From the NCBI GenBank assembly GCA_965240325.2, contig OZ251224.1, positions 620,001-684,000 on the forward strand: a stretch of 64,000 bases of DNA. The letters run 5' to 3'. Below the pieces are notes generated by a model. The model saw nothing but the letters and a program-made list of their open reading frames with translations, was not told the origin of the DNA and did no database searches. Positions 105-43,205 of this stretch are shown piece by piece (position 1 is the first letter of the stretch; each line of letters begins with the position of its first letter). The position numbers and the translations under genes are program-made. The DNA comes from Rebecca billardiae RCC1528. Taxonomy: Eukaryota; Protista; Haptophyta.

Positions 105-1523
105 ATGTGGCGCTGCCGCCTGCTGGCGGCGGTGCTGGCTGGTGAGGTGGCAGGCGCTGCGGCGCAGCCGTGCCTCGCCGTGCGGGCCGACCAGCTCGCG
201 CGTGGCGCTGACGACGGCGAGCCCTTGCGAGCGTGCATGCCTTCGGGCGTCGACGCGTGCACGCCGCACGTCTCGTTCAAGGCCCTCGCATATGCGCGAA
301 TGGTGCGCGCGGGCGTGCTCATGCCGCCACCCACGGCGAGGTCACCCGGCGGTGGCGCCCGCAGACATACCGCGCCGAGCGCGATAAGGGCGATGGGATG
401 GGGGCTCGACCCGGCCACTCGCGCGCCGATCAACCTGCACTGGCTGCACGTGCTGCACCAAAAAGTGGCACACCACCATTTCGCTCGCACGCTCGGCGTG
501 CGGACGGCGCGCTACTTCGCGTGCGCTCAGGAGAGCCCGGCTGCGCTGCTTCGACAGCTCAGGACGCCACTGCCGTCCAGCTACGTCGCCAAGCTCGCGC
601 AGGGCAGCTACGCGCGGGAGGTGTTTGTCGTGCGCGACGGACGGCTCGCCGACCTCCGCAGCCAGGTGACCACGTTCTCGCGCACGCCTGTGTCGCTCAA
701 GCAGGTGGTGCACAAGCTCAGGCTGGCGGCGGCGGCGCGCGCGGTGCGCGGCGCGCGCAAGCATACCTTCTTGCTCGAGTCATTCCAGCCGTCCGTTAGT
801 GACCCGGGCCGCGCTGTCGACTTTAAACTGTATGCATTTGGCCGGAACGTGCCCGTCGCAGAGTACGACAACGTGATGACCAACCGCCCGGGCTTCTTCG
901 CACTCGCGTGCGACGCGAGCGTGGTGGGCTGCCCGGCGGTGGCCGCGGTGGGCGGCGCGGGTGCGCCGACACCGGTCTTCTACGAGGTGAACACCAACCT
1001 CACGCTCGTTGGCGCAGCTGGCGGGGCGACTGGCACGTGCGGCGCGGCACTGCCGGCTGAGGCGCCCCTCGGCGTGACGACAATGCGTAAGCTCGCGCGC
1101 ACGGTGGCTGGCGCGCTGGGCGCCTTCTTCCGCGTCGACTTTTATGAGACGCACACGGGGCCCGTGCTCAGCGAGCTCACGTTCATCCCCGGCTGGTACG
1201 ACGGTTACGTGCTCCGAGCGCCGTTTCGCGACCAGCTCAGCAGATACCTCGGCGCGCAGTGGCGCGGCGTCGAGGGCGGCGGCACACCTCAGCGCACACC
1301 ATGCTGGTTTCCGAGCGGGTGGGACGCGATGCTCGACACGTGCATAGGCTTCGGCACGTACAACCTCACCGCGCTCATCGACGCTAACTGCAATCTCGAC
1401 GAGCCTGGCGACGCCGCCGACGCACGCAAATGGCGCGCCGCCGCGCGTGAGATTGCCCAGGCGTACGCAGAATTCGAGCGCACGACCGCGACGAGGAGTT
1501 CGAGCAATGGCGTAGTCGGATAG
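105..1523 (+). CDS. TupA-like ATP-grasp protein with N-terminal signal peptide
   Basis: Motifs YVAKLAQGS, DFKLYAFG, FFRVDFY and SELTFIPG match TupA-type ATP-grasp; hydrophobic N-terminus MWRCRLLAAVLAG. Start could also be ATG 87 or 51. No intron seen. Confidence 0.7.
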   Translation: MWRCRLLAAVLAGEVAGAAAQPCLAVRADQLARGADDGEPLRACMPSGVDACTPHVSFKALAYARMVRAGVLMPPPTARSPGGGARRHTAPSAIRAMGWGLDPATRAPINLHWLHVLHQKVAHHHFARTLGVRTARYFACAQESPAALLRQLRTPLPSSYVAKLAQGSYAREVFVVRDGRLADLRSQVTTFSRTPVSLKQVVHKLRLAAAARAVRGARKHTFLLESFQPSVSDPGRAVDFKLYAFGRNVPVAEYDNVMTNRPGFFALACDASVVGCPAVAAVGGAGAPTPVFYEVNTNLTLVGAAGGATGTCGAALPAEAPLGVTTMRKLARTVAGALGAFFRVDFYETHTGPVLSELTFIPGWYDGYVLRAPFRDQLSRYLGAQWRGVEGGGTPQRTPCWFPSGWDAMLDTCIGFGTYNLTALIDANCNLDEPGDAADARKWRAAAREIAQAYAEFERTTATRSSSNGVVG

Positions 1524-1928
1524 CTTCATGCCGCCCTGCATGAGCCTGGGTCATACGTATTCAAGATGTGACGACTTGATATTGATGAATCATACGTGTT
1601 GTTACTATGCCGATTCTCGGCGGTTCGCCACGCGCGCGCGTCATCAGGCCACGTGAATCGTGATCCAGCAGCTTTAATAAGTTTAATTGAATGAAGTCGT
1701 AGTCTGAGGCATTGTCGACGGACTGCCCGGACGGCCAGACAGCCGACCCAGCGGGCGTCGATTGACCTCGGGCTCGATGCTATATCTCGATCGGTCGCTC
1801 TGCTAGGCAAGGCAGGCAAAACAGAGTAGGCGGCGAGCAAAAGTTATCCCACACGCTGACAACGGGCGCGAATAATTAGGCGCGTGCAAACCGTCAAGCT
1901 GAAGCTGTCAAAAATCATCATCACCGAG

Positions 1929-1997
1929 TTATATTATATTATATTATATTATATTATATTATATATTATATTATATTATATAATATTATATATTATT
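1929..1997. repeat. (TATAT)n-type AT microsatellite
   Basis: Directly visible. Confidence 0.9.
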
Positions 1998-2180
1998 GTA
2001 AGCTAGCTATTAACACTCGCAGTAGCTAAGATCGCGATTCATTATTAATTGACATCGATTCAGATGATGGCGGCTGTAGTTAAAGTGTCGTCGTAATTCA
2101 TCATGTCGCACTGCGGCCATACTAGCTCATAACTACAGCTACTGTACTGTAATCTCGCCTACCTGAGCTGTGTGCGTCTC

Positions 2181-2370
2181 TTATGGCGCATGCCCCCCCC
2201 CCCGAAAGGTCTGAGCGTGAGCGAAAGCCGGGGAGGGGGCGGCGCACGTGCTCCGCAAAATCAAAAAGAGGATGCGCGCAGGATTTTGGGGATTTTTCGG
2301 TAGGTGGCCACCGCGTATGAGTGGATATCGCTGCCGCAATGATTGCGTTTGTAGTAGATGCTAATTTTAA
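2181..2370. repeat. Dispersed repeat family A, copy 1 (probable TE terminus)
   Basis: Shares cgaaaggtctgagcgtgagc and gcacgtgctccgcaaaatcaaaaagaggatgcgcgcagga with 56748-56988; short inverted copy at 9125-9158. Confidence 0.85.
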
Positions 2371-2930
2371 CGATAGTAACACTTAGGGGAATGCAGGGTG
2401 GAATAGCACATAACACCAGCCGTGTGTTAGAACATTCCGTCATAGTAAGATGCCTGAATTGTAAGAGCCTGAAAGAGCTCGCCAACCATAGAAACGATAG
2501 GTTGGGTCGTCAGCTTTGATTCACGCGCTTCTGAAAAACAGCGTTTTAGATTAGACGCATCCCTCTTCTCTTAAGAGAACTGCGCTTCAAAAACACCGTT
2601 TCAACGAAAGACGATCGCCCGCCATTCAACTGAAACGAGATTCTGCATAAAGCGAACCAAAGATGTTATTGCGCGGGTAGTCCGAACCGACGTTCCCGCG
2701 CGCTCTCATATCATACAGCTATCGAGCTACTGACTTGCTCATGCGGGTGGGATTCGACATCTCTATCTGCGAGGATTAACAGCTCTCTGAAAACGATTGT
2801 GTCCTGGACAACTTGAAAGGGCAGCGATCGGCTTTGATTCTGCCTATTGTAGGGAAAGTTTTATGGTACGAGTTAACGAACCGTCACTTCTGGGCTCTGG
2901 TCGCGAACAGTCGCCAACTGCCGGCACTAC

Positions 2931-4039
2931 GTGCGCGATCGCGTGGGGCGATCGCGTGGGGCGCGACTCCGGCGTGCAGCGGAAGCGCCCGAAGCGGAGG
3001 CGTCGGGGGCGGCGGCTGAAGGGAGCGAGGGCGGTGGTGGCGGCACCGAGGACGAGGGAGGCGCGCCGAACGGCATGTCCGTCCTCACCCTCGCCATCGG
3101 CGGCCGCCCGCGCGTCACCGCCGCCGGCTCTCAGCCGACGACAACGCCCGCGAGTGCCGCCCACGGCGCGCGGCGGGCGCGTCACGGCAGGCGGCGGGGG
3201 CGGCGACTGCAGGGAGCGAGGGCGATGGTGGCGGCGCAGTCGAGGGAGGTGCGCCATCCGGACAGCGCGGCGGCGCGGCGCGCGGCCGAGCGCGGGAGCC
3301 TGGGCGGCGGCGGGCGCGCGGCGGGGCATGTGGCTGTGCTCACTCAGTGCTGCCCGAGAGGCTGGCGCACTCGCCCAGCGCCGCCGCGCACACCGCCGCC
3401 GACCTCGCGCGCACGACCTCCGTCAACTCCTCCGTCAGCGGCGGAGAGCGCGTCGCCTCGCCGCCCACGCTGCCGCCCAGCCGGTTCGTCATCCGAGCGC
3501 TCGCCGGGCGCGCGCGGCGTGACGCGCCGGGCCGCGGTCGCCGCCTACTAGTACTAACTAAGTGGTGGGACCGCCGCTGGGGGGCGGGGCGGGCGGAGGA
3601 GATGGCGGTGGCGAAGGAGGACGCGGTGGTGGACGTGGACGTCACGCAGTCCGGGCTGCACTGGCTCATCCACCTCCTCTCTGCACTCGACCCACCGCCG
3701 TCACCGACGGCGCAGCAGCTGGCGGCGGCGCGACGTCATGGTGGCGGGCGCGGCGGCGCGGCCTCGGCCGAGGCGGGCGCGCGCCGCGCGCGCCGCTGCG
3801 GCGGCGTGGAGCGGCGGGAGCTGAGCGGCGCGCTGCTGCACACGCAGTCACGCTGCGCACGTGCTGCAGACGCTGTACGAGCGCGCCACCGCCGACGCCG
3901 CTGCAGACGCTGTACGACTACGAGCGCGCCACCGCCGACGCCGTCGCGCCGCCGCTGCCCCCGCCGCACCGGCACCGTCCGACCGTCCGACCGTGTCGTC
4001 ACAAGCCGCGGCTGCTGCTCACATTCACAAGCTCACTAG
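2931..4039 (+). pseudogene. Decayed GC-rich coding sequence of unknown family
   Basis: Coding-like segments lie in shifting frames; an 11-nt insertion (3549-3559) interrupts AVAAY|KWWDRRW; LQTLYERATADA is tandemly duplicated at about 3863-3943. Confidence 0.5.
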
Positions 4040-4354: not shown

Positions 4355-5521
4355 TCACTGCGGACGGCGCCGGCGCGGAGCCGCAGCCTGCTTGGCCTGC
4401 TTGCCATGCTGCGAGGTGACGCGCGCCCGCGACGATGGCGGAGCCTGCACCACGGGCGCGGGTCGCTTGCGCGGGGCGGTGGCCTGCTGGCTTGGCGCCA
4501 TCCGGCCATTGATGCTCGGCATGCGCGACGCCAGGGTTGCCGGGAACGGCATGGGCGGCAGCATAATGTTCGCCATATTCGCAATGGCAGCCCACGCGGC
4601 CACCCCACCCGGGTTCGCAAATTGCATGGAAGTGGGGACGGGTGGCAGACCGCGCTGCGCGATCATGGACGCGAGCCCGCTGGACTGCAGGACGCGGTCC
4701 GCCGTGCCGAGGAGCGTGAGCACCGCGATGGGGATGTGATGCCCTGGGCGGTGGCACACGAGCACGCCCGGCGTGTTGTGCTTGCGCAGGCCCGCCTGGT
4801 CCATCAGCACAGCAAACACGAGCAGCTTGCGCCCGCCCTTGCAGTACGGCAGCGAGATGAGCACGTCTTCGGCGAAGTACTCGCCCCGCCCGAGAGCCTG
4901 CCCGTTTGTGCCCCGCTTGCGCGGATCCAGCGACGAGCGGCAGATGTTGTCCACGTTCGCCTCGTCGGTGCCGTGGAAGACGAGGCGGATCGACTTCTCG
5001 CCGCTCTTCTTGTACGCAGCGAGGAAGCGCTTGTACAGCGGCTGGCCGGGCTGCGAGTGCGGGTTGTGGAAGACCTCCTTCACGCGTAGGCAGGCCGCAC
5101 GCTCGCTCAGGAATCGGTCGATGCTGTTCCGGTAGGGCAGGAGCACGTCGTCATCCGAGCGGTCGTGTGCGGTGAGGTCCACGCTGTCAAACGCGCGCTG
5201 CATCTGGCGGGCGAGCGTCTGGTCGTCCGCAGTCAGGTCGATCGGCTCCGCGGCAGGATCGACGGCATCGTCGGTCGACGACAGGTCGATCACGAGCCCA
5301 TCCTCCCTCGCGTCGCCTGCGCTGCCCCCCGCCTGCGCGCCACTTGCACCTGCTCGCGAAGGGCCGTCGCCGGACTCCACGGGGTCCGCCTCGTCAGCGA
5401 CAAGGTCGATGGTGGGCAGCTGTGAGGTGGGTCGAGGAGCGATTCGTGGTGGAGGCTGCCGTTGAACATCCTCATCGGAGTCGTCGAGCACGATCACTTC
5501 CTGCGCCGCAGTTCGGCGCAT
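4355..5521 (-). CDS. PARP-like ADP-ribosyltransferase domain protein with N-terminal array of SUMO-interacting motifs
   Basis: VFHGT, GRGEYFA and SLPY form the PARP catalytic core; VIVLDDSDED, TIDLVADE, VIDLSSTDD, PIDLTADD and SVDLTAHD match the SIM consensus; ATG at 5521. Confidence 0.8.
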   Translation of the reverse strand: MRRTAAQEVIVLDDSDEDVQRQPPPRIAPRPTSQLPTIDLVADEADPVESGDGPSRAGASGAQAGGSAGDAREDGLVIDLSSTDDAVDPAAEPIDLTADDQTLARQMQRAFDSVDLTAHDRSDDDVLLPYRNSIDRFLSERAACLRVKEVFHNPHSQPGQPLYKRFLAAYKKSGEKSIRLVFHGTDEANVDNICRSSLDPRKRGTNGQALGRGEYFAEDVLISLPYCKGGRKLLVFAVLMDQAGLRKHNTPGVLVCHRPGHHIPIAVLTLLGTADRVLQSSGLASMIAQRGLPPVPTSMQFANPGGVAAWAAIANMANIMLPPMPFPATLASRMPSINGRMAPSQQATAPRKRPAPVVQAPPSSRARVTSQHGKQAKQAAAPRRRRPQ

Positions 5522-5784
5522 GGCAACTGATGGCCACGCCCCCGGCTTTGTCCTGTCCCCCCTGCTCACTCGGTTGAGTCCGCCGCTGCTTGCTCGGAGC
5601 GATGACTGAGTAAACGCGGGTGCAGCCGTCCAGGCCTCCCGCAGCAGTGGCACTCCCTTGCTCCAGCAGTGGCAGCAGCCCGCCAATCACAAGAGTGGCG
5701 TTGTAGGACAAACGCGGGGGTCCGGTTCAGAAGCGGGTGAGCACCGGTCGCTGCGGCGGTCGCGCATCCAGCACGTGCTGATTC

Positions 5785-6276
5785 ATGGCCATGATTGCCA
5801 CGACGGCTGACGCGGTCGCGCTCAACTGCACAAAGATCGCAGACTCCCTCCGAGGTGTGCTCGAGAAGCCTGTGGACTTTGAGAAGCTCGATGCTGATGC
5901 ACTTGATGAGGTCATTGTCCTCCTCAGTAAGCAGCTCGAGGTGGCCCAGGATGTGCTGAGCAAGAAGGGGATCAAGCCGTTCAAGCATGTTGACTCGGTG
6001 AGCGTGATGCACCGGCGCGAGTCAAAGTCTGCGACACCGCGGAAGACCTCGGATAAGGTGGACGTGGGTCTCCGCCATGTGGATTCTATCCAGCTGAGCC
6101 GCTCGCGCCTCTCCTCCCAGGGCAATGTGCAGGTCGACCATCTGCACAACGGCTCGTCCTTCCCGGAGAAGATGCGCGAAAAGATCAAGGCGGCTCCGGC
6201 ACCCGCGGCCGCAGCGGCAGTGGTGGTCGGGGCGTTGCTGGTTGGGCTTGCGTTCAGGCTCGCACGCAGAAAGTGA
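5785..6276 (+). CDS. Hypothetical tail-anchored membrane protein (163 aa)
   Basis: Coding-like composition; C-terminal TM segment VVVGALLVGLAF followed by RLARRK*. Confidence 0.65.
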   Translation: MAMIATTADAVALNCTKIADSLRGVLEKPVDFEKLDADALDEVIVLLSKQLEVAQDVLSKKGIKPFKHVDSVSVMHRRESKSATPRKTSDKVDVGLRHVDSIQLSRSRLSSQGNVQVDHLHNGSSFPEKMREKIKAAPAPAAAAAVVVGALLVGLAFRLARRK

Positions 6277-9367: not shown

Positions 9368-11200
9368 CTACGCACCCCGGCGCCGCAGCGGTAGCAGCTG
9401 CGCGATTCGCGCAGGAGAGGTGAGGTTGGCCATCCGATCGGCAGCGCTCATGCCGTGGCCGAGCGCTGCAGTCTGCCAGCCACACGAGTACGCGCCGCCG
9501 TCTGACGTGATCCAAAGCGCTTGGCCGTACTCGAGAAAGCAGTCCACCAGCTGGCCATGCGCTGGGGCGTGCACGCGCACCGGAAGCAGCTGATTCCCAC
9601 CAGCTGAGCCGATGCCGAGCAAGCCGTGCTTGTTGGCGCCAAAGGTGTACACGCTGCCGTCCGCGCCCATCACCGCGCTGCAATCACTGCCCGCGCTGGC
9701 GCGCACGATGCGCACGCCCTGCAGCGCCTCGATGCGCCTGGGCACGAGTACGTTGGATTTGTCACCATGGCCAAGGCAACCAGAATCCCCACACCCGAAC
9801 GAGTGCACGCCGCCAGTGGCATCCACCACCAGGCTGTGACCATCGCCCGCACTCACGTGCACGGCGCGCACGCCCTTCAGCGCCTCGATGCGCTGAGGCG
9901 TGCGCAGAGTCTTCTGGTCGCCATGCCCGAGGCAGCCTGCTTCGCCGCCACCGCACGAGTACACGGCACCACCCATAGACAGTATCAGCGTGTGCCCGTA
10001 ACCAGCGGACATGCCGCCCATGCGCACACCGTCCAGCGCCTCGATGCGCACAGGCTCCAGCCGGTTCTCAGTGTCGCCGTGGCCAAGCTGGCCGTGCTCG
10101 TTCCATCCCCAGCTGTACATACCGCCCGCTGCGGTAAGCGCGAGGCCGTGAAGCTGACCAGCGGCGATGCCCACGACGAGCCCCATGCTGATCATGCCCA
10201 GCGCGGTGAAGACTCGGCGCGTCTCCTTGTCGCCCAGGCCCAGCTGGCCGCAATCATTCTGACCGCACGCGTACACGGCGCCACAGTCGCTGAGCGCGAG
10301 CAGGTGTCGAAGCCCAGCCGCCACCGCACGCACGCATACCGCCGAGAGCGATGCCACGCGCGTCGGCACGAGAACCGCCGAGTCGCGCAGCTCCGGATGG
10401 CCCAGTGCAGCGGGCACATCTAGCTCATCCTCGTCTTGCTCCTCCTCACCGCACGTGTGCAGCCCGCCCGATGCGTCCACGAACGCGCTGAACGTCGCGA
10501 CTTCATCCTCCGAGGTGCCACACCCAACCACGCACGCGTGCGCATCGGCATGCTCCAGCACTCGCTCGCGCGCGAACAGCTCCGCCCGCCACGAGCACGC
10601 GCCCGCGGGGAGAGCCGCCGGCAGCGCGCCCTCGTGCCCGCGCTGACGCGCGCGCTCGCGCAGCGCGTGCTCCACCGGCGAGCGTTCGCCGGGCGCGACG
10701 CGGAAGAGGCGCGACGTGGCGTTGGCACTCGCCAGATCATGCGCGCACTCGAGCCAGCCGAGGATGCGCGTGACCACGTCCGTCGGCAGGTCGCACAGCG
10801 TGAGGCCAGCCGTCTCCGTCGGCGCTGCCGCCGTGTCGCTGGGAGGTGGCTCGCGCTGCACGGCTGTCGACCCATCCGGCGCGGCGCAGCCTGTGCACGT
10901 CGCGACGGCGACATGGCGCAGAGTGCCTAGCTCGTGAATGCCGTCGTACTGCGTCCTCGCCGACGCCGCCTTCGTCACGCGCTTGCACCCCGGCCGGCCG
11001 CACCGCACGACGCAGCGCTCGGACGCGAGCGCGCGCTGGAAGAGGCACACGTTGTGCGCGACGTGCTCGTCGCCGCACGCGAGCTGCGCCCACGGCTGGC
11101 TCCCAATACGATCGCCGCACAGCGCGCACGGCACCTCGAAGACCTGGGACGCGGCGGCGGCGCCGTCGTCCACGAGCGAGCGTTTGCGCGAGGGCTCCAT
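9368..11200 (-). CDS. RING-like zinc finger + F-box + RCC1-repeat protein
   Basis: CALC...C-GDE-H-VA-H-NV-C...C-GRPG-C; F-box LCDLPTDVVTRILGWL...DLASANATSRLFR; multiple RCC1 repeats (e.g. YSWGWNEHGQLGHGD, VSAGDGHSL). Confidence 0.85.
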   Translation of the reverse strand: MEPSRKRSLVDDGAAAASQVFEVPCALCGDRIGSQPWAQLACGDEHVAHNVCLFQRALASERCVVRCGRPGCKRVTKAASARTQYDGIHELGTLRHVAVATCTGCAAPDGSTAVQREPPPSDTAAAPTETAGLTLCDLPTDVVTRILGWLECAHDLASANATSRLFRVAPGERSPVEHALRERARQRGHEGALPAALPAGACSWRAELFARERVLEHADAHACVVGCGTSEDEVATFSAFVDASGGLHTCGEEEQDEDELDVPAALGHPELRDSAVLVPTRVASLSAVCVRAVAAGLRHLLALSDCGAVYACGQNDCGQLGLGDKETRRVFTALGMISMGLVVGIAAGQLHGLALTAAGGMYSWGWNEHGQLGHGDTENRLEPVRIEALDGVRMGGMSAGYGHTLILSMGGAVYSCGGGEAGCLGHGDQKTLRTPQRIEALKGVRAVHVSAGDGHSLVVDATGGVHSFGCGDSGCLGHGDKSNVLVPRRIEALQGVRIVRASAGSDCSAVMGADGSVYTFGANKHGLLGIGSAGGNQLLPVRVHAPAHGQLVDCFLEYGQALWITSDGGAYSCGWQTAALGHGMSAADRMANLTSPARIAQLLPLRRRGA

Positions 11201-13822: not shown

Positions 13823-16800
13823 CTAGGGCACGATCATCGCCGTCGCGGGCAGGGATGATGCCGCAGCAGAGACACGCGCGAGCGCCACACGCGCGGCTAG
13901 TGCCAGTGGCAGCGGCGCTGGCTGCTGCCCATCCCGCGCGTCGGCGAGCTGGGCGAGCGCGGGCGCGAGCTCGGCCGCGGCCTCGCCGAGCGCCCGGCCG
14001 TCGAGAGCGCCGAGGAGGCGGACGGCGTGGTGCACGAGGTCCGAGCGGCGCATGGCACGGGGCGTAGCCGCGGCGCCGCCCTCCTCCTCGGCAGCGCCCA
14101 CGCTCACCTCGCCGACCAGCCCCGTGCAGAGCGCGCCGCAGGCGAGCGTGCTCACCGCCGCGCGCGCGCCGGGCTCGGCGGCCGCGAGCAGCCTGGCGAG
14201 GAGGAGGTGCGCGGCGCGAGGGTGCGCGCCCTGCGTGAGCAGCGCGCAGAGCCCCGCGATGACCACCGCGCCCACGCCCCCGCCCGCGGGCGACGCGGCC
14301 CCGTCCTCGTCTGTGTCCGCCTCGTTCGCATCGTCGGCCGCGTCGACGTCGTCGGCGCGCGCAGCCGCCGCGTCCGCGCTCGCGCGCGCCGCGCCGACCG
14401 AGCGCAGGAGCGCCTCACGCAGCTGCGCGCTGTCGAGCATCGCCTCGACCAGCTCGAGCGCCGCGGCCGCGATGGCGGGCTCGGCCGACGGGGCGAGCCA
14501 CTCCGCGAGCGGCACGCGCGGCGCGCCGGGCTGCGCTCCGCGCCGTCGCTCCGTCGCCAGCGCGCTCAGCAGCGCGCTGGCGCCGAGCGAGGCGCACGGC
14601 TCACACGGCAGGCGCGCGCACGCGCGCGCGCACAGCGCGGCGCAGCGCAGCGCGAGCGCCACAGCGCGCGCGCCGTCGAGCGCAGGCACACGCCACTCCG
14701 CGGGCGCGGGCGGCTCGGCCGAGGCCGACGGCTGCTGCGCGGACGCGCACGCGGGCGGCGGCGAGGCCTCCGCGCCGAGCGCGTGCGCGTTCAGCGCGGC
14801 GCCGATGCCCACCGCCAGCCTGCACTCGACGCAGCACGCGCCGCTCAGCGCGTCCATGTGTTCAGACACGGTCGCCGCCGAGCCGCCCGGCGCGCAGGGC
14901 CACGCGCGAGCGCCGCCGCGCGTGCTCTCGGCGGCGGGCGCGGCCGAGCCGCCGCCCGCTCCGCTGCCACCGCCGCCCTCGGCGGGTGCGCGCACCTCGG
15001 CACTCAGCCGCGGCTGCTGCTGCTCCTCCGCGCCGCGCGCTGTCGGCCGCGCGTCGGCCGAGCACGCTCCGCTCTGCAGAAGCGCGCACGCCAGCCGCAG
15101 CGCGCGCCGCACCGCGCTGGCGCGCGCCTCGAGAGACGAGTGCTCGGCGGCCGGCGGCGCGCGCAGCAGGTGCTCCTCCGCCAGCAGCAGAAGCTGCCGC
15201 GCGCCCTCCGCACCACCGTGCGCGCCGCCCCTGCCCCGCTCTCCCGCCGCCCACAGCCGCTGGAGCGCGCCGCGCAAAGCCGCCTGCTCCGCGCGCGCGC
15301 CCTCGAGCGGCGCGGCGCGGATGCGCGCCGCAAGCGCTGCGGCCGGCGTGACCGGCGCGGCGCGCGCGAGAGCGCGCGCGAGCGCGTCCACGCTGCCGGC
15401 ATCGGCGTGGCTGCCCAGCACCCACTGGCACGCGGCCGCGCGCGCGCGCGCCGCCTCGCCCCTGCCCTCTGCCAGTGCTGTCTCCATCGCGTCCGCGCCC
15501 GCGTCCGCGTCCGCGTCCGCCGCGTCGGCGCGCGCCGGCGGCGCTGCGTGCGGAGGGCGAGGGAGGTCCGCGCTGGGCGGGAGCGTGCACACCTGCACCG
15601 CCGCGTGCGCGCGCGCTGGCGGCGGCGACGGCGGTCGCACGCCGCGCTGGGCAGGCGCGGGGCCGGCCGCGGCGACGATGGCGGCTGCGGCCGCGCTCGC
15701 GCGCGTGTGCGGTGAGCCCTCACACGCGTGCCGCGCGCTCGCCTCGCCGACGGCGGGGCCATCGGGGCCCTCCGGGATCATGTCCGCCGGATCAAAGCTG
15801 TCGGGCGCGCTGCCCGCGTGCGCCGCGCGCGCGTGCTCAGCCGAGCGCAGCGGCGACGTGTCGAGCGCGCGCGCGCGGCCGGGGGTCGAGGCCGCGCCCG
15901 ACAGCCGCCGCTTGCGCGCGCCTGCGCCGAGCGAGGCCGGCTGCTGCTGGCGCGGCGTGCGTTGGAAGAGTGGCGGCGCGGCGGGCGAGGGCGGCGGGTG
16001 GTGCAGCGAGGCGTGCGCGCGCGCGTCCGGAGTCACGCCGAGCGCGCCGCGCGCCACGACGCTCGCCGCGCCGCCGCCGGCCGCCGCGCCGGCTGCAGGC
16101 GTGTCGAGGCTGTGGGCGGCGCCGCCTGCGCTGCCCGGCGGCGGCGGCGGCGCGCGGCGCGCGGCCGCCCCCGCCGCGCCGGCCGCGGGCGTCTCGCCGC
16201 TCGAGCGCGCGCCGCGCGCCGCGCTCCCAGCGCACGCGCCGGCCGGCGCGCGCTGCTGCTCCAGCTGCTCCCGCCGCAGCTGCACGCGCAGCTCGGTCAG
16301 CTCCTTGGCCGCGCTCGAGTGCGCCGCCCGCAGCTGCTGCAGCTCGCGCGCCGCCTGCGCGCGCTCCGCCTCCTTAAACTCGAGGTCGACGCGCAGCTTG
16401 TCGAGCTCTGCGCTGACGCGCGCGTGCTCCGCGGCGCTCGCGGCGGAGGTCGACGCCGCCGCCTCGATCGCGCGCTGCCGCGCGGCCGCGAGCGCGCGCT
16501 CGGTCTCAGCAAGGCGCGCGGCGAGAATGTCAGCGTGCGCTGCTCGGATCTCGACCGGCTGGTGTGCGGGCACCCGGGGCGCGGGCGCGGGCGCCGGCGG
16601 CGGAAGCGACGGTGGCGGCGCGGCGGGCGGGCCTCGCGGTGGGGCCGGCGCCGGCCGTGGCGCGGGGGGCGCGCGCGATACCGGAGGAGGATCGAAGAGA
16701 TCGAACATGTTCGGCCGAGGCGCGTCTGACGGCACCGGCGGCACCGGCGGAGGCGCCGGGGCGTTCTGCACCTGCTGGTCGAGGAGCGCGAAGAGGTCAG

Positions 16801-16840
16801 CGTCGGAGACGCCGTCGATGGCGAAGGGGTCACCCGTCAT
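13823..16840 (-). CDS. Large Ala/Pro-rich coiled-coil protein, possibly ATRIP/Rad26-like
   Basis: N-terminal acidic-hydrophobic motif DGVSDADLFALLD; coiled coil containing ELDKLRVDLEFKEAE resembles the ATRIP ELQFKDAE segment; helical C-terminus. Gene existence is well supported, family is tentative. Confidence 0.5.
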   Translation of the reverse strand: MTGDPFAIDGVSDADLFALLDQQVQNAPAPPPVPPVPSDAPRPNMFDLFDPPPVSRAPPAPRPAPAPPRGPPAAPPPSLPPPAPAPAPRVPAHQPVEIRAAHADILAARLAETERALAAARQRAIEAAASTSAASAAEHARVSAELDKLRVDLEFKEAERAQAARELQQLRAAHSSAAKELTELRVQLRREQLEQQRAPAGACAGSAARGARSSGETPAAGAAGAAARRAPPPPPGSAGGAAHSLDTPAAGAAAGGGAASVVARGALGVTPDARAHASLHHPPPSPAAPPLFQRTPRQQQPASLGAGARKRRLSGAASTPGRARALDTSPLRSAEHARAAHAGSAPDSFDPADMIPEGPDGPAVGEASARHACEGSPHTRASAAAAAIVAAAGPAPAQRGVRPPSPPPARAHAAVQVCTLPPSADLPRPPHAAPPARADAADADADAGADAMETALAEGRGEAARARAAACQWVLGSHADAGSVDALARALARAAPVTPAAALAARIRAAPLEGARAEQAALRGALQRLWAAGERGRGGAHGGAEGARQLLLLAEEHLLRAPPAAEHSSLEARASAVRRALRLACALLQSGACSADARPTARGAEEQQQPRLSAEVRAPAEGGGGSGAGGGSAAPAAESTRGGARAWPCAPGGSAATVSEHMDALSGACCVECRLAVGIGAALNAHALGAEASPPPACASAQQPSASAEPPAPAEWRVPALDGARAVALALRCAALCARACARLPCEPCASLGASALLSALATERRRGAQPGAPRVPLAEWLAPSAEPAIAAAALELVEAMLDSAQLREALLRSVGAARASADAAAARADDVDAADDANEADTDEDGAASPAGGGVGAVVIAGLCALLTQGAHPRAAHLLLARLLAAAEPGARAAVSTLACGALCTGLVGEVSVGAAEEEGGAAATPRAMRRSDLVHHAVRLLGALDGRALGEAAAELAPALAQLADARDGQQPAPLPLALAARVALARVSAAASSLPATAMIVP

Positions 16841-17114
16841 AGCCGCAGCACCCTGAGCCACTCGGCCGACGGGTCGCGGGCCCGCGAGCCGCGGTGGGGT
16901 CGCCCCCCGCTCCCAACGACCGCGTGCGGTGCACTGGTGCCCGGCCGGCGCGAGCAGCCAGCGGGCCACACGGACAAGCCTGCCACTGGCCACTGCCAGA
17001 GGCTGGCGCGCGGGCGGGATTTCTTTTGGTCCCGCGGAAAAAGAAATCGGCCAGCTGTCCACGGCCCGAGTGCGGTTACAAAAAAAGGACCGCGCTTGTC
17101 GGTTGTCATTCAGG

Positions 17115-19857
17115 ATGGTGAGCATGCCGACCTCCAAGCGGCGTGCACTCGCCCTCGTGCTGCCCGAGTCGGGAGCCGAGCCGGCGAGCGCGAAAGTGGA
17201 CGCGATCGTCAACACGCTCCGTGCGAACAATTTCGCGCTGCTCGGCCAGAAGACCATCAGCCTCTCCGTGGCGGAGGCTGAGGCGTTCTACGCCGAGCAC
17301 GACGGCTTGCCCGTGTTCCGCAAGCTGGTGGCCGCGGCGACGAGCGCGCCGATCGTGGCATTCGGCCTCGAGCTGCCGGACGCCGTCGCAGTGCTCGGCA
17401 CTCTGATGGAAAGCGGTACCCTCCCGGCCGATCTCCACGTCTCCAAGCCGGAGGACGTTGACCGCGAGCTCAAGTTCTTCTTCCCAGACGGTACGGACGC
17501 GCAGCGAGCGCACGCATGCTCCCGTGCAGCGCGTCGGCCGCGCGCGCTCACCCTCGACCACGCGCGTGCGCCCGTGCGTGCGCCCGCGCGCAGCCTTCCC
17601 GCGCGAGCCGGCCTTCGCCCTCATCAAGCCGGAGGTGGTCTCGACGAACAGGAAGGAGGAGCTGCTGCGCGAGCTGGAGGCGCGCGGCTACACGGTGGCA
17701 GCCGAGCGGACCGAGCAGCTGAGCGAGGCGCTGGCGCTCACGCTCTTCCCCAAAGCGGATCAGCACACGCTGACGCTGCTCACCTCCAACCCGAGCTGCC
17801 TGGTCGCGCTCGAGAAGCCCTTCGCCATCGCCGACCTGATCGGCGCGCTCGGGCCGCCAAACCCGGCGGTGGCGGCCGAGGTCGCGCCCGACTCCCTGCG
17901 CGGCAAGTTCGGCACGGACGAGGTGAAGAACGCCATCGACGTGTCGATGTCGGCAGAGGAGGCGCAGCAGCAGCTCACCGCCGCCTTCGGCGAGCGCGAC
18001 TTTGTGCGCGCGCCCGACGAGCGCTCGGTCGCCATCCTGCTGCCAGACGCTGTCGGCAAGCTCGAGGTGGCGGTGGCCACGCTGCGGCGCAACGGCTTCC
18101 GGGTGCTGGCGACGAAGCAGACGCCGCTGAGCGCGGACACGGCGACGGCGCTGCTGTCTGGGCTGAACCAGGACCTCATCGAGTACGCGCAGTCCGGCCT
18201 CTCCACCGCCATCTGCGTCACGCGCCCGCACGCCGTGCGCGCGCTGCGCTCGATCGTCGGGCCGGCCGGCGCGGCCGTCGTCTCGACGCTTAGCGCCGCG
18301 CTCGGCTTCGACAACGTGGGCGAGGACCGCTCGCCGGCGATCTGCCCGGACGCGGTGGAGGTGGCGGATGCGAGCTGCCGCGAGCTCTTCCCCGAGCTCT
18401 ACCAGATGCAGACCACGCTCGCCATCATCAAGCCCGACGCGGTCGGCGCGGGCGTGACCGAGCAGATTGTGCAGGCGGCGGTGGACCGCGGCTTTGCCGT
18501 CCGCGCGCGCACGAGCCTGCAGCTGCCCAAGTTCAAGGCGGAGGAGTTCTACGCGGAGCACAAGGGCAAGCCCTTCCTGCCCAACCTGGTCGGCTTCATG
18601 TCCTCCGGCCCCTGCGTCGCCCTCGCCCTCGCGCGCCCCGGCGCGATCGCCGAGTGGCGCGCGCTGATGGGGCCGACGCGCACCGCGGCCGCGCGGGAGG
18701 AGGCGCCCGGCTGCCTGCGTGCGCTCTACGGCACCAACAACACGCTGAACGCGACGCACGGCTCGGACTCGGAGGAGAGCGCGAAGCGCGAGGTGAAGTT
18801 CTTCTTCCCCGCGCTCTCCGTCGAGCCGCTCCCCCGCGCCGAGCAGGTGGCCATCGCCATCAAGGAGCAGCTGGAGCCGACGCTGATTGGCGCGCTCACC
18901 GAGCTGTGCAAGGCCAAGCCAGAGGAGCCTGTGCGCTGGCTGGGCAACTACCTGCTCACGCACAACCCGAACAAGCCCAAGGTGGCGCAAGTGGTGATCC
19001 AGAAGGCGGTGCCGCAGCCGCCGCCGAAGAAGGCCGTGCCGGATCTCAAGGTGCGCGCTCGGCTCACGGGGCAGCGTCGCCAACGCCGCCGCGAGCGCGC
19101 GCGCGCCCCCGCCCGCCCGCACGCTCTGCGGGCTTGCTTGGCTGAGCTCGCGCTGCCCTCGCGCCCCCGCCCGCCCGGCCGCGCCCGCGCGATCGCACGT
19201 GGTGCGGCGCAGGTGATCAACGGCCTGCGCGAGTACTTCGACTCGCTCGACGTGAACAAGAGCGGCTCCCTCAGCCTCTCAGAGTTCCGCGCCGCGCGCG
19301 TCGGGCAGCTCGGCATCACATTGCCAGACATCGACCTGGTGAAGGCCGACCTGTTCGTCCAGCTCGACGCCAACGCGGACGACCGCGTCACGTGGGCCGA
19401 GTTCCGCGCCGGGCTGCTCGAGCGCGCGGCGGACCTGTGCTTCGACTCGCGCGTGTCGCTGTACCGCAAGCTGTTCGGCGAGGGCCAGTACGCCGGGGCG
19501 CGCACACCTGCAGAGCTCGTGTCCAGCCTGCAAGCGAACACGGTGCGCGAGCGCGCAGCCCGCGCGGGGGGGCGCGCCCGCACGGCTTGCCCTGACCACG
19601 GCCGTGCGCTGCCCCGACCGCGCCGCGCGCAGGCCATCCTCAAGGCGCTCTTTGGGGAAGACTTGCCGGCACTCGTCGACGTCTTCAAAGCGCTCGACAA
19701 AGACGGCTCCGGCTCCGTCACATGGGACGAGTTCGTCGAGCGCGTGGAGGGGGCGTTCCGGCCGCGCGCGCCGATCGCGCACCGGGAGCGCATCAAGAAG
19801 CGCGCGCCGCCGCCACTGGAGGCGCCGCCTTCCGCGCCGCCGCCGCCTGCCTTCTGA
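17115..19857 (+). CDS. Multi-NDK-domain (NME5/NME7-like) flagellar protein with Dpy-30 and EF-hands; predicted introns 17491-17593, 19051-19212, 19543-19632
   Basis: FALIKPE, TLAIIKPDA, EEFYAEHKGKPF and NATHGSDS; Dpy-30 LIGALTELCKAKPEEPVRWLGNYLL; EF loops DVNKSGSLSLSE, DANADDRVTWAE, DKDGSGSVTWDE; GT-AG introns restore the frame. Confidence 0.85.
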
Positions 19858-24272: not shown

Positions 24273-27230
24273 TCATGCGGCGGCCAGCTTGTTCTCCGGG
24301 TCGAGCGCGCGGCACGCGTCGTGCTCGGCGCTGATCAGGCAATCGAGCGGCGCGTGCGGCACGAACGCTGCAGGGCCTGGCGCCGCGCGCTGCGCGCGGC
24401 CGGTGGGCACGCCGCATGCGAATCGCGCGTTCACCGCGTGCGCGCGCAGCGCGAGCTCGAGCACCGCGTCTGAGCCCGGCTGCTCGAAGCGCGCGCCGTA
24501 CTCTCGCACGCGGCCGCTGTGCAGCTTGCCCATGCCGTGCTGCTTCCACGCCACGTGGCGCGCGACGCCGCGCATCTGCGTGGCGGCCGCCCATCCCGCG
24601 CGCCCGCTCTGCGTGCGCGGCATCGCCGCGACCGTGGCAAAGCCCGCCGCCCACAGCCGCGCCTCGAGCTCGCAGTCTACCGCGACCGAGCCCGCCTGGC
24701 CCCGCGCCGCCATCGTCTCGTTGAAGCCGCCCACGTCCACAAACGCCGCCCGCTCGAGCAGCAGCGGGCCCATGTCTGCGCACCGCGCCGCCTCGACCGC
24801 GAGCTCGACGGGCACGTGGGCGGGCGCGGCGGCGGCGGCGCCCGCGCCGCCGGGCGGCTGCACGCGCACCTCCGCCGTCGCGTTGCACCGCGGCTGCAGG
24901 ATGTGCCCCTTGCCGTCGCGCAGCGAGTCGAGGCCAAAGTCGAGGTGCGTGAGGCCGCGCGGCGCCGCCGGGTAGCCAAAGCGATCGTCCGATCGAGCGC
25001 CGCCGCGCGGGCCCGGCAGCGCGCGCGAGAGCACGCCGGCGCGCGCGAGCTGCTCGCGCGAGGGCAGGCGGGCGGCCTCGTGGGGCACGTAGAAGAGCAC
25101 CGCGTTGAAGGAGGCCACCTTGATGGGCACGGGCACATCGGCGCCGCCGTGCGCGCGCAGCAGTGCAAGAGGCCCTGCAAGCCACGCCGCGTCCTGCACA
25201 CCGCGCTCGCGGCCGGCTGGCGGCGAGGCGGTTGGCGCCGCGCGCTGGCGGAGCTGCGCGGCCGCGGCCGCGGCCGCGCCCACCGGCGGGACGGGCGGGT
25301 ACGCGCCGGGCTTGGCGCACGCGCCGGGCACGCCGTCGTCGTCCTGCGCGAAGAGCACGTACTCGCCGCGCGCCATCCACGCCAGACGGTTGTACCCGCG
25401 CAGCTCGTGCACGCTCGGCGAGAGGAGGGCGTAGTCACCGCCGCCGAGCGCTGCGATCCAGCGGGGGGCGTCGCCGAGCGCGTGCGCGCGCGAGTCGACG
25501 TTGACGAGCAGCTCGGCGCGCACGCCCGCCGCGCGCGCGCACTGCGCGTACCCCGCGACGAGCGGCTGTATCGCCAGCTCGTGCGCGCGGCCCGGCGCGT
25601 TGAAGTACTGCAGCACGACGCTCAGCTCGACGGCTTCGGCCGCGGCCGTCCACGGGCTGAGGCAGCTGCCGTCCGCGCACGCGCGCGCGCGGCGCTTGGC
25701 GCTGGCGGCGGGCTCGCGCGCGGCGGCGGCGACGGCGCGCGCGCACGCGCCGCCGAGCGCGGCCGTCACGTTCCCCATCGGCATGCCGCAGTCGACGGGG
25801 CCGAGCGGCGCCCGCGGGTCCCAAGCCAGCTCGGCGCTCGGCGCGCACCGCAGCTCTCGCGCGTTGAACGCGCGCATCGCGCCGAAGATGGCGGCGAAGG
25901 CGTCGGTCGCGGGGTTCTGGTACGCGGCGTCGAAGAAGCGGGCCGCGCGCTTCGTCTGCTGGCACGAGCCGGGCTGCTCCCACGCGAGGTGCGGCTTGAT
26001 CACGCGCACCGACTCGGGCACGTCCGGCGCGGCGATCGCTTTCTCCGCGAGCGGCCGCGTGGCCTCGCCCGGCCGGTGCACCGCGATCTCGAGGAGGAAC
26101 TTCATCGGCCACTGGTTCACGTCGGTCAGGTAGCGCGTGAGGTAGACCGTGGCCCAGCCCGCCAGCCACATCCGCGCCTGGAGCTCGCAGTCGACGTAGA
26201 TCGCGCCGAGCACCCCTTTGGACGCGCCGCGCTCGTCGAAGCCGCGCACGGCGGTAAACGCCTCTCGGCGCACGAGCAGGGGGCCTGCGGGCGAGCACAG
26301 CACGGCCTCCGTGCGCACGCCGACGCGCGGGTCGAAGCAGCGCGGGCGCTCGGACTCGGTGTACGTGGGGCACTGCGTGTGCACCCCCGGGCTCACGTGG
26401 TGGATCGCGTTCTCCTGCAGCCCCACCACGCCCACCTCCTCGCGCAGCCGCAGCACGCGCGTCGCGTTGGCCAGCCAGCCGCACGTGTCGTACCCGTCGT
26501 ACACCGCGACCTGCGGGTTGGGCGCCTCGTCGTCCTGCACGAAGAGGAGGTGCGCGCCGCGCGCCATCCACGCCAGCCGGTTGTACCCGCGCAGCTCGTG
26601 CACGTTCGGCGAGAGCAGCGCGAAGTCCGACTCGCCCAGCACGTCGAGCCACTCGCGCACGTTGCCGTCGGCGTGGTCGCGCGAGTCCACGTTCACGAGC
26701 ACCTCGACCGATAGGCCTGACGAGTTGGCGCACCGGCGGTAGCCCTCGACGAGGGGGCGGATGCCGACGTGGCGGAAGCGGCCGGGCGCGTTGAAGAACT
26801 GCACGATCACCGACAGGTCGACGCGATCTTCTAGCGTGGGTGGGAGCCGTCGCCGAGCTTTGAGCGGCGGGCGCGGAGGCGGTTGCCGGAAGTGCGATGA
26901 AGATCGCTGCGGAGCGGCGATGCTCACGTCGGCAGAGCGCGCGCTGCCACGGCCGGAGGGCTCCGGCTCGCCGGCCAATTCACGCTCGGCGGCGTCTTGC
27001 GCGGCTCCCTCCCACCTGCGAGCCTCGCGCGGCGCAGCGCGAGCATCTGCGACGATCGGTTTGGCCGGCTCGCTCGCGGTGATCGAATGCTGCGAGGTCA
27101 AGCTTAGATGCGCCGAGCGCAGGACCACGGCCAGGCACAGGAGCGCGACTAGGAGGGTGAAGCGCACCGGCAGGGACAGCCCCCGCGAGAGGGGCGCCAA
27201 AGGAGCCTCAACTACACGTCGTGGCGCCAT
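24273..27230 (-). CDS. Type II membrane glycosyltransferase with two tandem GT2-like (GT-A) domains
   Basis: N-terminal TM FTLLVALLCLAVVL; duplicated LSV(I/V)(V/L)Q(F/Y)FN...LVNVDS...VHELRGYNRLAWMARG..L(L)F(V/A)QDD...GF(D/N)E...VDCEL.AR.W.AG. Confidence 0.85.
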   Translation of the reverse strand: MAPRRVVEAPLAPLSRGLSLPVRFTLLVALLCLAVVLRSAHLSLTSQHSITASEPAKPIVADARAAPREARRWEGAAQDAAERELAGEPEPSGRGSARSADVSIAAPQRSSSHFRQPPPRPPLKARRRLPPTLEDRVDLSVIVQFFNAPGRFRHVGIRPLVEGYRRCANSSGLSVEVLVNVDSRDHADGNVREWLDVLGESDFALLSPNVHELRGYNRLAWMARGAHLLFVQDDEAPNPQVAVYDGYDTCGWLANATRVLRLREEVGVVGLQENAIHHVSPGVHTQCPTYTESERPRCFDPRVGVRTEAVLCSPAGPLLVRREAFTAVRGFDERGASKGVLGAIYVDCELQARMWLAGWATVYLTRYLTDVNQWPMKFLLEIAVHRPGEATRPLAEKAIAAPDVPESVRVIKPHLAWEQPGSCQQTKRAARFFDAAYQNPATDAFAAIFGAMRAFNARELRCAPSAELAWDPRAPLGPVDCGMPMGNVTAALGGACARAVAAAAREPAASAKRRARACADGSCLSPWTAAAEAVELSVVLQYFNAPGRAHELAIQPLVAGYAQCARAAGVRAELLVNVDSRAHALGDAPRWIAALGGGDYALLSPSVHELRGYNRLAWMARGEYVLFAQDDDGVPGACAKPGAYPPVPPVGAAAAAAAQLRQRAAPTASPPAGRERGVQDAAWLAGPLALLRAHGGADVPVPIKVASFNAVLFYVPHEAARLPSREQLARAGVLSRALPGPRGGARSDDRFGYPAAPRGLTHLDFGLDSLRDGKGHILQPRCNATAEVRVQPPGGAGAAAAAPAHVPVELAVEAARCADMGPLLLERAAFVDVGGFNETMAARGQAGSVAVDCELEARLWAAGFATVAAMPRTQSGRAGWAAATQMRGVARHVAWKQHGMGKLHSGRVREYGARFEQPGSDAVLELALRAHAVNARFACGVPTGRAQRAAPGPAAFVPHAPLDCLISAEHDACRALDPENKLAAA

Positions 27231-27610
27231 CACGCATCAAGCGGCGACCCCGCCCGCCGCCGGCATCGCAAATGCGCCCGACGCACGATGGCGGGAGTCG
27301 CGGGACATATATCGCACGATGGCGGTGGCAACTCGCAAGCGGGGTGAGGATTCCAGCATGATTCTTGCGCTCTCTCCGGAGGGAGGAGGGCGACTGAGGC
27401 CCAGCTGTTGCTCACTGGCTGGCACTCGGGCACTCTAAAGGGACTGTGGTAGCTCCTCATGCAGCAGCCGCTGTCGCCGTGAGGCCTGGAAGTGTGCAGA
27501 GCCGGTATGCCATGATCCGCGGGCGCAACACCGAGAGAGGTCGTGGAATGCGACACGCGCCGTTCGCTGCTGTGCCTGGTAGCGCTCGGCTATGCTGAAG
27601 CCACTCATAA

Positions 27611-32283: not shown

Positions 32284-32919
32284 TCACTGGATGGAGTGTG
32301 CGACAACGGGAGGTTTCTCCACCACCGTCGTGACGAGGTCGACGACGCGCGTGAGCTTGCCCTCAAAGTCAGTTGAGTTGTCAATAATTTGGCGCCGCGG
32401 ATGATTTTGCCAGACCTCGCGAGTGCGGTGGTCGGTCTGCACCGCTTCTTCCACAGTCTCGTGCCGAAAGTCGTGTGCCGAGTAGTGTGCAGGCGCGCCA
32501 TCTGCTGCGCTGACCAGATGAACCACTGTATCGTACCTCCCGCCGCTGACGTCGCTCTCAGAAACGCCCACCCGCTGCAGGACCTGGCCCCATTCATCGT
32601 CGCTCATGTACGCTTTGCCGTCCATACCACCACGGTCGCAGAGAAGAAGCGCCCTCGTGCCATTCGAAACCGCAATCGAGGCGAACGAGTTCTCGAGTTG
32701 CAACTGCAGTCTCATGAGGCCTGTCTGGAAAGTGACGCGTCGATCAGCGTCGCCCAGGTCGGTTGGTGTGCATCCGTTCTCCCAAAACATGGTGGCCGCC
32801 TCGGGCACGAGGTACACGCGGAAGCCCTTCTGGCTGAAGTGGCTGCGCAACCGCGCGAGAGCCGACGTCTTACCCGCGCACGGTCCCCCCGTGAGGCAGA
32901 TGAAATAGACTTCTGACAT
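32284..32919 (-). CDS. AAA_28 / TTD14-like P-loop NTPase
   Basis: ICLTGGPCAGKTS, VPEAAT, LLCDRGGMDGKAY, YDTVVHLVSAADGA and WQNHP..IIDNSTDFEGK. Confidence 0.85.
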   Translation of the reverse strand: MSEVYFICLTGGPCAGKTSALARLRSHFSQKGFRVYLVPEAATMFWENGCTPTDLGDADRRVTFQTGLMRLQLQLENSFASIAVSNGTRALLLCDRGGMDGKAYMSDDEWGQVLQRVGVSESDVSGGRYDTVVHLVSAADGAPAHYSAHDFRHETVEEAVQTDHRTREVWQNHPRRQIIDNSTDFEGKLTRVVDLVTTVVEKPPVVAHSIQ

Positions 32920-33163
32920 GCTGCGAATCCGTCGCCGCCGGCTGACGACGGCTGCACGCCTGCACTCCTCTCCCCTGCCTGCACGCAGCTTTTCAAGCTC
33001 AAAGCGAGGCAGCAAAGGGCCACGCTGTTCCGCTGCGAGCTCGCCACAAGCTGGGGCGAGCCTCGGTGAGCCAAGGGCCGTACACTCGTACAGTAGTAGC
33101 GCCGCCCGGACTTTACAACTGTCTCTGTGCGCGAGTTGGACTCCAGTGGAGTCGTTTCAAGCA

Positions 33164-43171: not shown

Positions 43172-43205
<34 letters not shown>

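Follow-up and report, generated by a model that had tools for sequence, protein, structure and literature searches.

The stretch of DNA analyzed here, referred to below as the window, comprises 64,000 nucleotides of the haptophyte Rebecca billardiae RCC1528 (contig OZ251224.1, positions 620,001 to 684,000), and carries on its minus strand, at 4355..5521, a complete and intronless coding sequence for a protein of 388 amino acid residues (aa) followed by a TGA stop codon. On balance, this gene is expected to encode a small, probably nuclear mono-ADP-ribosyltransferase (mono-ART) of the PARP (ARTD) superfamily, aimed at its targets by a disordered acidic N-terminus that would read SUMO and ubiquitin. 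The protein is laid out in three parts, the disordered acidic N-terminus, a compact PARP domain (aa 123-272), and a Pro-rich basic tail. Judged from sequence, the new element would be a module of short linear motifs for reading SUMO and ubiquitin, previously undescribed, that is joined to a PARP-family mono-ART and is shared by a sizeable family of protist proteins.

In the proposed mechanism, five SUMO-interacting motifs (SIMs) would bind SUMO by β-strand addition, their multivalency favoring poly- or multi-SUMOylated targets, and a helix of the MIU (motif interacting with ubiquitin) type, wedged between SIM4 and SIM5, would bind the Ile44 patch of ubiquitin. The PARP domain with its H-Y-V triad, tethered in this way, would then bind NAD+ and attach one ADP-ribose unit to the marked protein or to a neighboring one. 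Since the MIU sits between SIMs, the SIM4-MIU-SIM5 block would be best suited to mixed SUMO-ubiquitin signals such as those made by SUMO-targeted ubiquitin ligases (STUbLs), following the logic of the tandem SIM and ubiquitin-binding domain (SIM-UBD) of RAP80. Such an enzyme would act as a relay from SUMO to ADP-ribose, as was proposed in a preliminary description of this DNA made from the letters alone.

The gene itself was identified from the listing of open reading frames (ORFs), the codon-position GC content, and the collinearity of its orthologues. The ORF starts with ATG at 5519-5521 and ends with TGA at 4355-4357; its GC content at the three codon positions is 0.71/0.51/0.83, and the third-position value is 0.74 in the N-terminal part, 0.91 in the PARP part, and 0.83 in the tail. 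Met at 5521 is the true start because the in-frame extension upstream of it (5522-5686) shows no codon-position GC periodicity, and the start site is the same in the aligned orthologues. These orthologues are collinear with the 388-aa protein and range in length from 347 to 405 aa, the named relatives being haptophytes (Pavlovales sp. CCMP2436, Diacronema lutheri, and Prymnesium parvum). A second, independent contig, from Logan, encodes exactly this protein, and the neighboring genes are shared as well, namely a 163-aa ORF and one for a 14-3-3 protein. The SIM region and the PARP domain lie within one exon and one ORF, and the Diacronema lutheri orthologue is also a single-exon gene. Transcription of the SIM region has indirect backing from this single exon and from the complete ORFs ("type:complete") of MMETSP that exist for the relatives P0009, P0052, and P0116.

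Fold and catalytic residues of the PARP domain

The compact PARP/ARTD catalytic domain (aa 123-272; 4706..5155, minus strand) was matched by the Pfam profile PF00644 with an E value of 2e-10 and a score of 40.9 bits (cutoff 26.7), only positions 46-105 of the 199 profile positions being covered; the same profile matched all of the 115 relatives scanned. The nearest solved sequences in the Protein Data Bank (PDB) were ZC3HAV1, PARP12, PARP14, PARP15, and PARP10, with E values from 2e-6 to 5e-9, the latter value being reached with the family profile. In an AlphaFold2 model of the 388-aa protein, built from a 20-sequence alignment, the core (aa 123-272) was predicted with seven strands and with a predicted local distance difference test (pLDDT) value of about 68-96 per 10-residue block, while low confidence was assigned to aa 1-95, with pLDDT below 50 over most of aa 13-88, and to the C-terminal tail. 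All of the top 50 Foldseek matches of this model were PARP catalytic domains (E about 1e-6), and structural alignment by VIA-align spanned the whole domains of PARP14, PARP12, PARP15, PARP10, and ZC3HAV1 (Z 15.1; rmsd 2.6-3.1 Å over 134-138 residues). We regard the assignment of the modeled domain to the ART fold of diphtheria-toxin/PARP type as solid; the PARP fold, for which the preliminary description had proposed a check by profile or structure, was borne out by both.

Every motif that the preliminary description had read from the letters was present, including the five SIM-like strings ahead of the domain and, within it, HGT (aa 183-185), GRGEYFA (aa 211-217), S223-x-x-Y226, and PGVLVC (aa 251-256). 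Conservation was counted in an alignment of 151 near-full domains of the family to its hidden Markov model (HMM). His183 of H-G-T, the NAD+-binding residue at triad position 1 (4973..4975, minus strand), and Tyr215 of GEYFA at triad position 2 (4877..4879, minus strand) were each found in 151/151 domains, and the other pocket residues were nearly as constant (G184, 144/151; S223, 138/151; Y226, 150/151). S223 and Y226 follow Tyr215 at the PARP1-like spacing of Y+8/S+3. By these five residues, H183, G184, Y215, S223, and Y226, the predicted NAD+ pocket is intact.

At triad position 3, the residue most likely equivalent to the catalytic Glu is Val253 (4763..4765, minus strand), which starts a predicted strand at aa 253-256, and the claim that PGVLVC holds no Glu was thus correct. 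V253 was placed in the catalytic-Glu column because six members of the family carry Glu there, and because it aligns to V of "SVFVIF" in ZC3HAV1 (the "givvvh" segment), an alignment that is weak by itself. The composition of this column in the family was I77/V33/M9/E6/T4/L3/F3, the residues I, V, and M together accounting for 119 of the 151 domains. Because triad position 3 is V253, the protein was not classed as a polymerase: the catalytic Glu of the poly-ADP-ribose-forming class (H-Y-E; PARP1/2 and tankyrases) is replaced here with V253. The triad H183-Y215-V253, together with the best PDB matches, all of which belong to clade 3 (PARP12, ZC3HAV1, PARP10, PARP15, and PARP14), places the domain in the H-Y-I class of mono-ARTs. 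The H-Y-I triad is that of PARP10 and PARP12, both active mono-ARTs, and since these enzymes are active, the missing Glu argues, at the level of sequence, for mono- rather than poly-modification and not for inactivity. Of the two alternatives that the preliminary description had left for a PARP without Glu, mono-ART or inactive, the first agrees with the H-Y-I/V class found here and the second is not suggested by the loss of this residue. PARP10 has been described as a mono(ADP-ribosyl)transferase (PMC4245714).

Directly before the stacking Tyr, Glu214 (4880-4882, minus strand) is present in 150/151 family domains. This residue is specific to the family, the same position in solved PARPs being occupied by Ser, Ile, or Thr, and its role might be that of an acidic catalytic residue that has moved here, or that of a partner in a structural salt bridge.

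The PARP domain is followed by a low-complexity, Pro-rich tail (aa 273-388; 4358..4705, minus strand), recognized from the sequence and the AlphaFold2 model, in which two basic clusters were found on the minus strand, RKR at aa 351-353 (4463-4471) and RRRR at aa 383-386 (4364-4375). Of the 80 members of the family whose tail exceeds 40 aa, 48 have a basic cluster at its end. The clusters suggest nuclear import by way of a putative nuclear localization signal.

SIM-like motifs and a putative ubiquitin-binding helix in the N-terminus

The five SIM-like motifs are encoded in sequence on the minus strand. SIM1, VIVLDDSDED (aa 9-18; 5468..5497), has a classical core and an acidic/Ser flank similar to that of CK2-type phospho-SIMs, and lies in a segment with pLDDT below 50. 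It is followed by SIM2, TIDLVADEAD (aa 37-46; 5384..5413), recognized from the sequence, by SIM3, LVIDLSSTDD (aa 76-85; 5267..5296), by SIM4, PIDLTADD (aa 93-100; 5222..5245), which adjoins the MIU, and by SIM5, SVDLTAHD (aa 113-120; 5162..5185), which ends a few residues before the PARP domain. SIMs have been defined by the patterns ψ-ψ-x-ψ and ψ-x-ψ-ψ, and by a high-affinity class [VILFY][VI]DLT (PMC3991395). The classical consensus with three hydrophobic residues was found in three of the five motifs (VIVL, IDLV, and VIDL), and the [VILFY][VI]DLT class is approximated by VIDLS, PIDLT, and SVDLT. Each SIM core is followed by at least two Asp or Glu residues within seven residues, in an N-terminus of which about 21% is Asp or Glu.

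The [VI]DL motifs are more than a chance occurrence. A total of four are present in the N-terminal 135 aa, and of 20,000 shuffles that preserved the composition, one gave four or more. The density of motifs, 3.3 per 100 aa, is about 24-fold higher than the background in 13 other long ORFs of the window, where 0.14 SIM-like and 0.02 [VI]DL[TSCV] motifs were counted per 100 aa.

The motifs are conserved as well. Among nine Pavlovales-like orthologues, the fraction of the top residue was 0.80 for the SIM cores and 0.79 for the helix between them, versus 0.41 for the linkers. The core of SIM3 is kept in 7-9 of the nine orthologues, IDLTADD of SIM4 in 8-9, and DLT of SIM5 in all nine; D11 and L12 of SIM1 are invariant or nearly so over 20 homologues, which read VIDL plus acidic residues. 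SIM2 does not keep its place in the orthologue alignment (A1), extra xIDL(S/C) motifs being found elsewhere in the linker instead, and the number of SIM-like motifs per Pavlovales-like orthologue stays at 5-6 despite this shift. The preliminary description had made its reading depend on conservation of the SIMs in orthologues, and conservation was what was observed. Three properties of SIMs were thus found together, a hydrophobic core, an acidic or phosphorylatable flank within a disordered segment, and conservation among orthologues.

Between SIM4 and SIM5, a MIU-type helix, DDQTLARQMQRAFDS (aa 99-113; 5183..5227, minus strand), was recognized as a putative ubiquitin binder from the alignment, the AlphaFold2 model, and the residues known from published MIUs. 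The key positions are D100(-4), L103(-1), A104(0), M107(+3), and Q108(+4). The model gave a helix at aa 100-112 with pLDDT about 70, and A104 and Q108 are nearly invariant in the orthologue alignment (A1). Within a set of 22 MIU segments of the family (A3), Ala and Gln are invariant, Asp(-4) is conserved in at least 90%, and positions -1 and +3 are hydrophobic. For the MIU1 of RNF168, the D175A substitution abolishes binding and the critical Ala contacts L8/I44/V70 of ubiquitin (PMC5766498); the MIU of RNF169 uses L672/A673/L676 (PMC5426901), and Leu240/Gln241 are key residues in that of ZUFSP (PMC5824887). According to these published positions, the predicted helix at aa 99-113 has the form of a canonical MIU. 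The start of the helix (aa 99) is overlapped by SIM4 (aa 93-100), and SIM5 begins at aa 113; nowhere in the N-terminus is conservation higher than in the SIM4-MIU-SIM5 block. The UIM and MIU models of Pfam gave no match on the 388-aa protein at E values up to 10.

The family in marine protists and the weighing of alternatives

Relatives were collected by an exhaustive profile search with the alignment of the PARP domain, clusters at 50% identity being taken as representatives. A total of 147 representatives were obtained at E ≤ 1e-30, 620 at ≤ 1e-10, and 2436 at ≤ 1e-3. A word-indexed protein search, in which no more than 8000 candidates are scored, found only about 33 relatives, compared with the 147 found by the exhaustive HMM search, an approximately fivefold difference, and quick searches may therefore understate the size of the family. 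The sequences come mainly from marine metagenomes and MMETSP transcriptomes, Haptophyta being the only taxon named, and are marked by a family signature of invariant GEYFA, GQA, and VFAVLMD together with shortening of the loop that leads into the last catalytic strand.

Motifs were counted in the 120 representatives whose PARP domain is preceded by 30 or more residues. Of these, 88 contain one or more SIM-like motifs flanked by acidic residues, 67 contain two or more, and 42 three or more; the total was 237, versus 44.3 ± 6.2 in shuffled sequences. A MIU was present in 57, both SIM and MIU in 47, and neither in 22. Other proteins with the architecture of a SIM array plus PARP domain, which the preliminary description had suggested searching for, are thus frequent, and the conservation and enrichment of the motifs extend over a family of at least 147 clusters. 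The MIU pattern occurred 78 times in the 57 proteins versus an expectation of 0.75 ± 0.85, was absent from the 27,129 residues that make up the remainder of these proteins, and mostly starts 22-28 residues ahead of the PARP domain across the family. Among 21 tandem pairs of MIUs, 14 showed a spacing of exactly 29 residues. In the model of the prymnesiophyte-type relative P0018, a single unbroken helix of 53 residues (165-217; pLDDT about 65-92 per block) carries both MIUs; the remainder of this model is poor, with a mean pLDDT of 48.5 for the PARP domain. On this modeled geometry, the 29-residue spacing may encode specificity for ubiquitin linkage. A CCDC50_N match of Pfam on P0029 (E 0.067) was weak and was not used.

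When a FastTree phylogeny of the PARP domain was inspected, its backbone being weak, SIM-bearing members appeared on both halves; the motif-free members were scattered, and some of them were fragment-like. Four representatives (P0072, P0085, P0099, and P0101) carry at the N-terminus a RanBP2/NZF zinc finger with the signature C-T-F-x-N, which is typical of ubiquitin-binding NZFs, and in some members this finger is followed by SIMs, MIU, and a short PARP domain. Single members sporadically contain the Pfam domains UIM, UBA, UQ_con, RING, IBR, Deltex-C, WWE, and macro. As predicted from sequence, the recurring partners of the minimal PARP domain are elements of the SUMO/ubiquitin system, mostly in the form of short motifs invisible to domain databases. 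Conserved short linear SUMO- and ubiquitin-binding motifs, and not folded domains, would then accompany the minimal PARP domain in a sizeable family that has mostly escaped domain databases and belongs to ecologically important marine protists. Such a layout suggests that SUMO and ubiquitin marks directly recruit ADP-ribosylation.

Three other explanations were considered for the same protein. It is doubtful that the PARP-like domain is a pseudo-enzyme or scaffold, a sensor of NAD+ or ADP-ribose or a protein-binding module as in ZC3HAV1/PARP13, within a multivalent adaptor for SUMO and ubiquitin. The catalytic Glu is indeed absent, the domain is 30-50 residues shorter than the solved catalytic domains, and the inactive PARP ZC3HAV1 is among the best matches in both sequence and structure. 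ZC3HAV1, however, is without the His, whereas H183, G184, Y215, S223, and Y226 are kept here in 91-100% of 151 divergent domains, a pattern that selection for NAD+ binding and catalysis would be expected to produce, and PARPs with the H-Y-I triad such as PARP10 and PARP12 are active. A low probability is given likewise to the explanation that the acidic [VI]DL repeats bind a partner other than SUMO, by another kind of β-augmentation, as a PxDLS corepressor motif, with a histone or other basic protein, or in a condensate of acidic disordered regions, so that only the MIU, as in PARP10, or nothing would read a modifier. The SIM-like strings are short, PIDLT resembles PxDLS, and some subclades carry MIU but no SIM (for instance P0019, P0021, and P0067). 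The PxDLS/CtBP reading was rejected, however, since the Pro of PIDLT is not conserved (A, T, V, or P), as was that of a LIR/AIM, for which the required aromatic residue is absent from the motifs. The repeats fit the two SIM classes, classical and [VI]DLT, with acidic flanks, and arrays of them occur in 67 of the 120 representatives, beside bona fide ubiquitin-binding elements. An EAR motif was also considered and rejected, LxLxL being absent.

It is also unlikely, in our estimation, that SUMO or ubiquitin is itself the acceptor, presented to the active site by the SIM/MIU to which it is bound, the enzyme then editing, capping, or re-coding the chains. Ubiquitin ADP-ribosylation is known for DTX3L/PARP9 and for the bacterial SidE and CteC, and the family includes fusions to Deltex-C and to E2 (UQ_con); in addition, the distance from the start of the MIU to the PARP domain is nearly constant, at 22-28 residues, in most members of the family, and no more than a few residues separate SIM5 from the domain. 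A fixed tether, however, fits simple recruitment equally well. In a particular form of this idea, to which we attach an equally small probability, the SIM-MIU module would hold a SUMO-ubiquitin hybrid chain close to the active site and at a constant distance from it, the modifier itself would be ADP-ribosylated and the chains capped, re-coded, or handed over, and Glu214 may replace the catalytic Glu. If modifiers were edited in this way, the family would represent a eukaryote-encoded, PARP-type means of altering chains of ubiquitin-like proteins.

The preferred reading, that of a SUMO/ubiquitin-guided mono-ART, is opposed by several observations of its own. The PARP domain is about 150 aa long versus 170-200 aa for solved clade-3 domains, and the loop ahead of the last catalytic strand has only about 10 residues as counted by eye; this trimmed size leaves the activity of the domain unproven. 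In this species, PIDLT and SVDLT contain no more than two hydrophobic residues each, the orthologues often reading VIDLT, AIDLT, or AVDLT at these positions. SIMs and MIUs are short linear motifs, for which a match to a pattern is no proof of binding. No SIM or MIU proteins were found by the PDB profile search with the N-terminus, as expected for motifs so short, nor were MIU proteins found with the triple-MIU segment of P0131 or with the profile of 22 MIU sequences, the only hit of the latter being stomatin at E about 0.3; in both of these cases the motif is too short for such a search. As to the proposed nuclear localization, the basic clusters of the tail are the one ground for it.

Gene neighborhood and comparison with known systems

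Upstream of the gene, a spacer of 263 bp (5522..5784), identified from the ORF listing and found in the same arrangement on the Logan contig, separates it from a divergent 163-aa ORF (5785-6276, plus strand), and is presumed to be the promoter region common to both genes. The 163-aa product has no Pfam match; its C-terminal hydrophobic segment followed by RRK gives it the look of a tail-anchored protein. The neighboring genes of the Diacronema lutheri orthologue differ, and synteny with this species gives no clue to function since gene order is not kept. Beyond the 3' end of the PARP gene, the composition shifts sharply, from a GC content of 0.77-0.79 (3001-4000) to 0.46-0.53 (1501-3000). Elsewhere in the window, the N-terminus of a 610-aa RCC1-repeat protein (9371-11200, minus strand; Pfam RCC1, E 1.5e-63) is rich in Cys and His and is without Pfam match. 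The ORF at 17458-19854 (plus strand) combines nucleoside diphosphate kinase (Pfam E 2.5e-66), Dpy-30 (2.5e-11), and EF-hands (5e-14), a mix that looks flagellar or radial-spoke-like, and a CCDC113/CCDC96 coiled-coil gene was found at 32918-34306 (plus strand). Three very long ORFs on the minus strand, at 13826-17257 (1144 aa), 24276-27233 (986 aa), and 41148-46844 (1899 aa), include two without Pfam match (13826-17257 and 24276-27233); some of them may be spurious or lie opposite to real genes in this GC-rich DNA.

The crosstalk known so far between ADP-ribosylation and ubiquitin-like modifiers is one-way and partial: ubiquitin ligases dependent on poly(ADP-ribose) read ADP-ribose, and PARP10 reads ubiquitin through its ubiquitin-interacting motifs (UIMs). 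No description of an enzyme reading SUMO and writing ADP-ribose, or more generally of an architecture of SIMs plus a mono-ART or PARP domain, was found in the openly searchable full-text literature, in agreement with the preliminary description, which knew of no such enzyme class. Two PARP phylogenomic surveys, from 2010 and 2014, which list many ubiquitin-related fusions, contain neither SIM-bearing PARPs nor haptophytes. With 388 aa and no intron, the protein from R. billardiae is a compact and easily expressed candidate, in which the putative reader and writer could each be disabled by point mutations.

With PARP10/ARTD10, the protein shares short helical motifs of ubiquitin-binding type located N-terminal to a C-terminal PARP domain of H-Y-I type (PMC4245714), and the catalytic domains of PARP10 are among the best structural matches (Z about 14). 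PARP10, however, has UIMs and not MIUs, contains RRM and Gly-rich regions, has no SIM array described, and carries a catalytic domain of about 190 aa versus about 150 aa here; according to PARP surveys, it is restricted to vertebrates. Because motifs, domain size, and lineage differ, the haptophyte protein is not an orthologue of PARP10. The similarity to PARP12, ZC3HAV1, PARP14, and PARP15 concerns the fold (Z 14-15) and the common signature HGT...G-x-YFA...S-x-x-Y, but not the CCCH fingers and the WWE or macro domains of those proteins, none of which is present here.

On the side of the reader, RAP80 is the prototype of a tandem SIM-UBD receptor proposed for hybrid SUMO-ubiquitin chains, and has a SIM directly beside a helical ubiquitin-binding motif (PMC3646854); the same proximity was found here. 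The prymnesiophyte-type tandem MIUs on one predicted helix likewise recall the tandem UIMs of RAP80 or the UDM1 of RNF168. RAP80, however, is a non-enzymatic adaptor with UIMs, whereas here the receptor is fused to a predicted enzyme and is made of MIUs and up to five or six SIMs. RNF4 and other STUbLs also carry short tandem SIMs of [VI]DLT type in the N-terminus, read poly-SUMO by them, and deliver a C-terminal modifying enzyme (PMC3991395). The effector in the haptophyte protein is an ART of PARP type and not a RING, Pfam detecting only the PARP domain and no RING in the 388 aa, and the protein does not belong to the STUbL family because it lacks this RING. The preliminary description had seen in the N-terminus an RNF4-like reader; the SIM array fits that comparison, but the MIU embedded in the array makes the likeness to the SIM-UBD type of RAP80 closer than that to a pure poly-SUMO reader of RNF4 type. 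As a whole, and by analogy with these systems, the protein would work like a reader of RNF4 type joined to a writer of PARP10 type.

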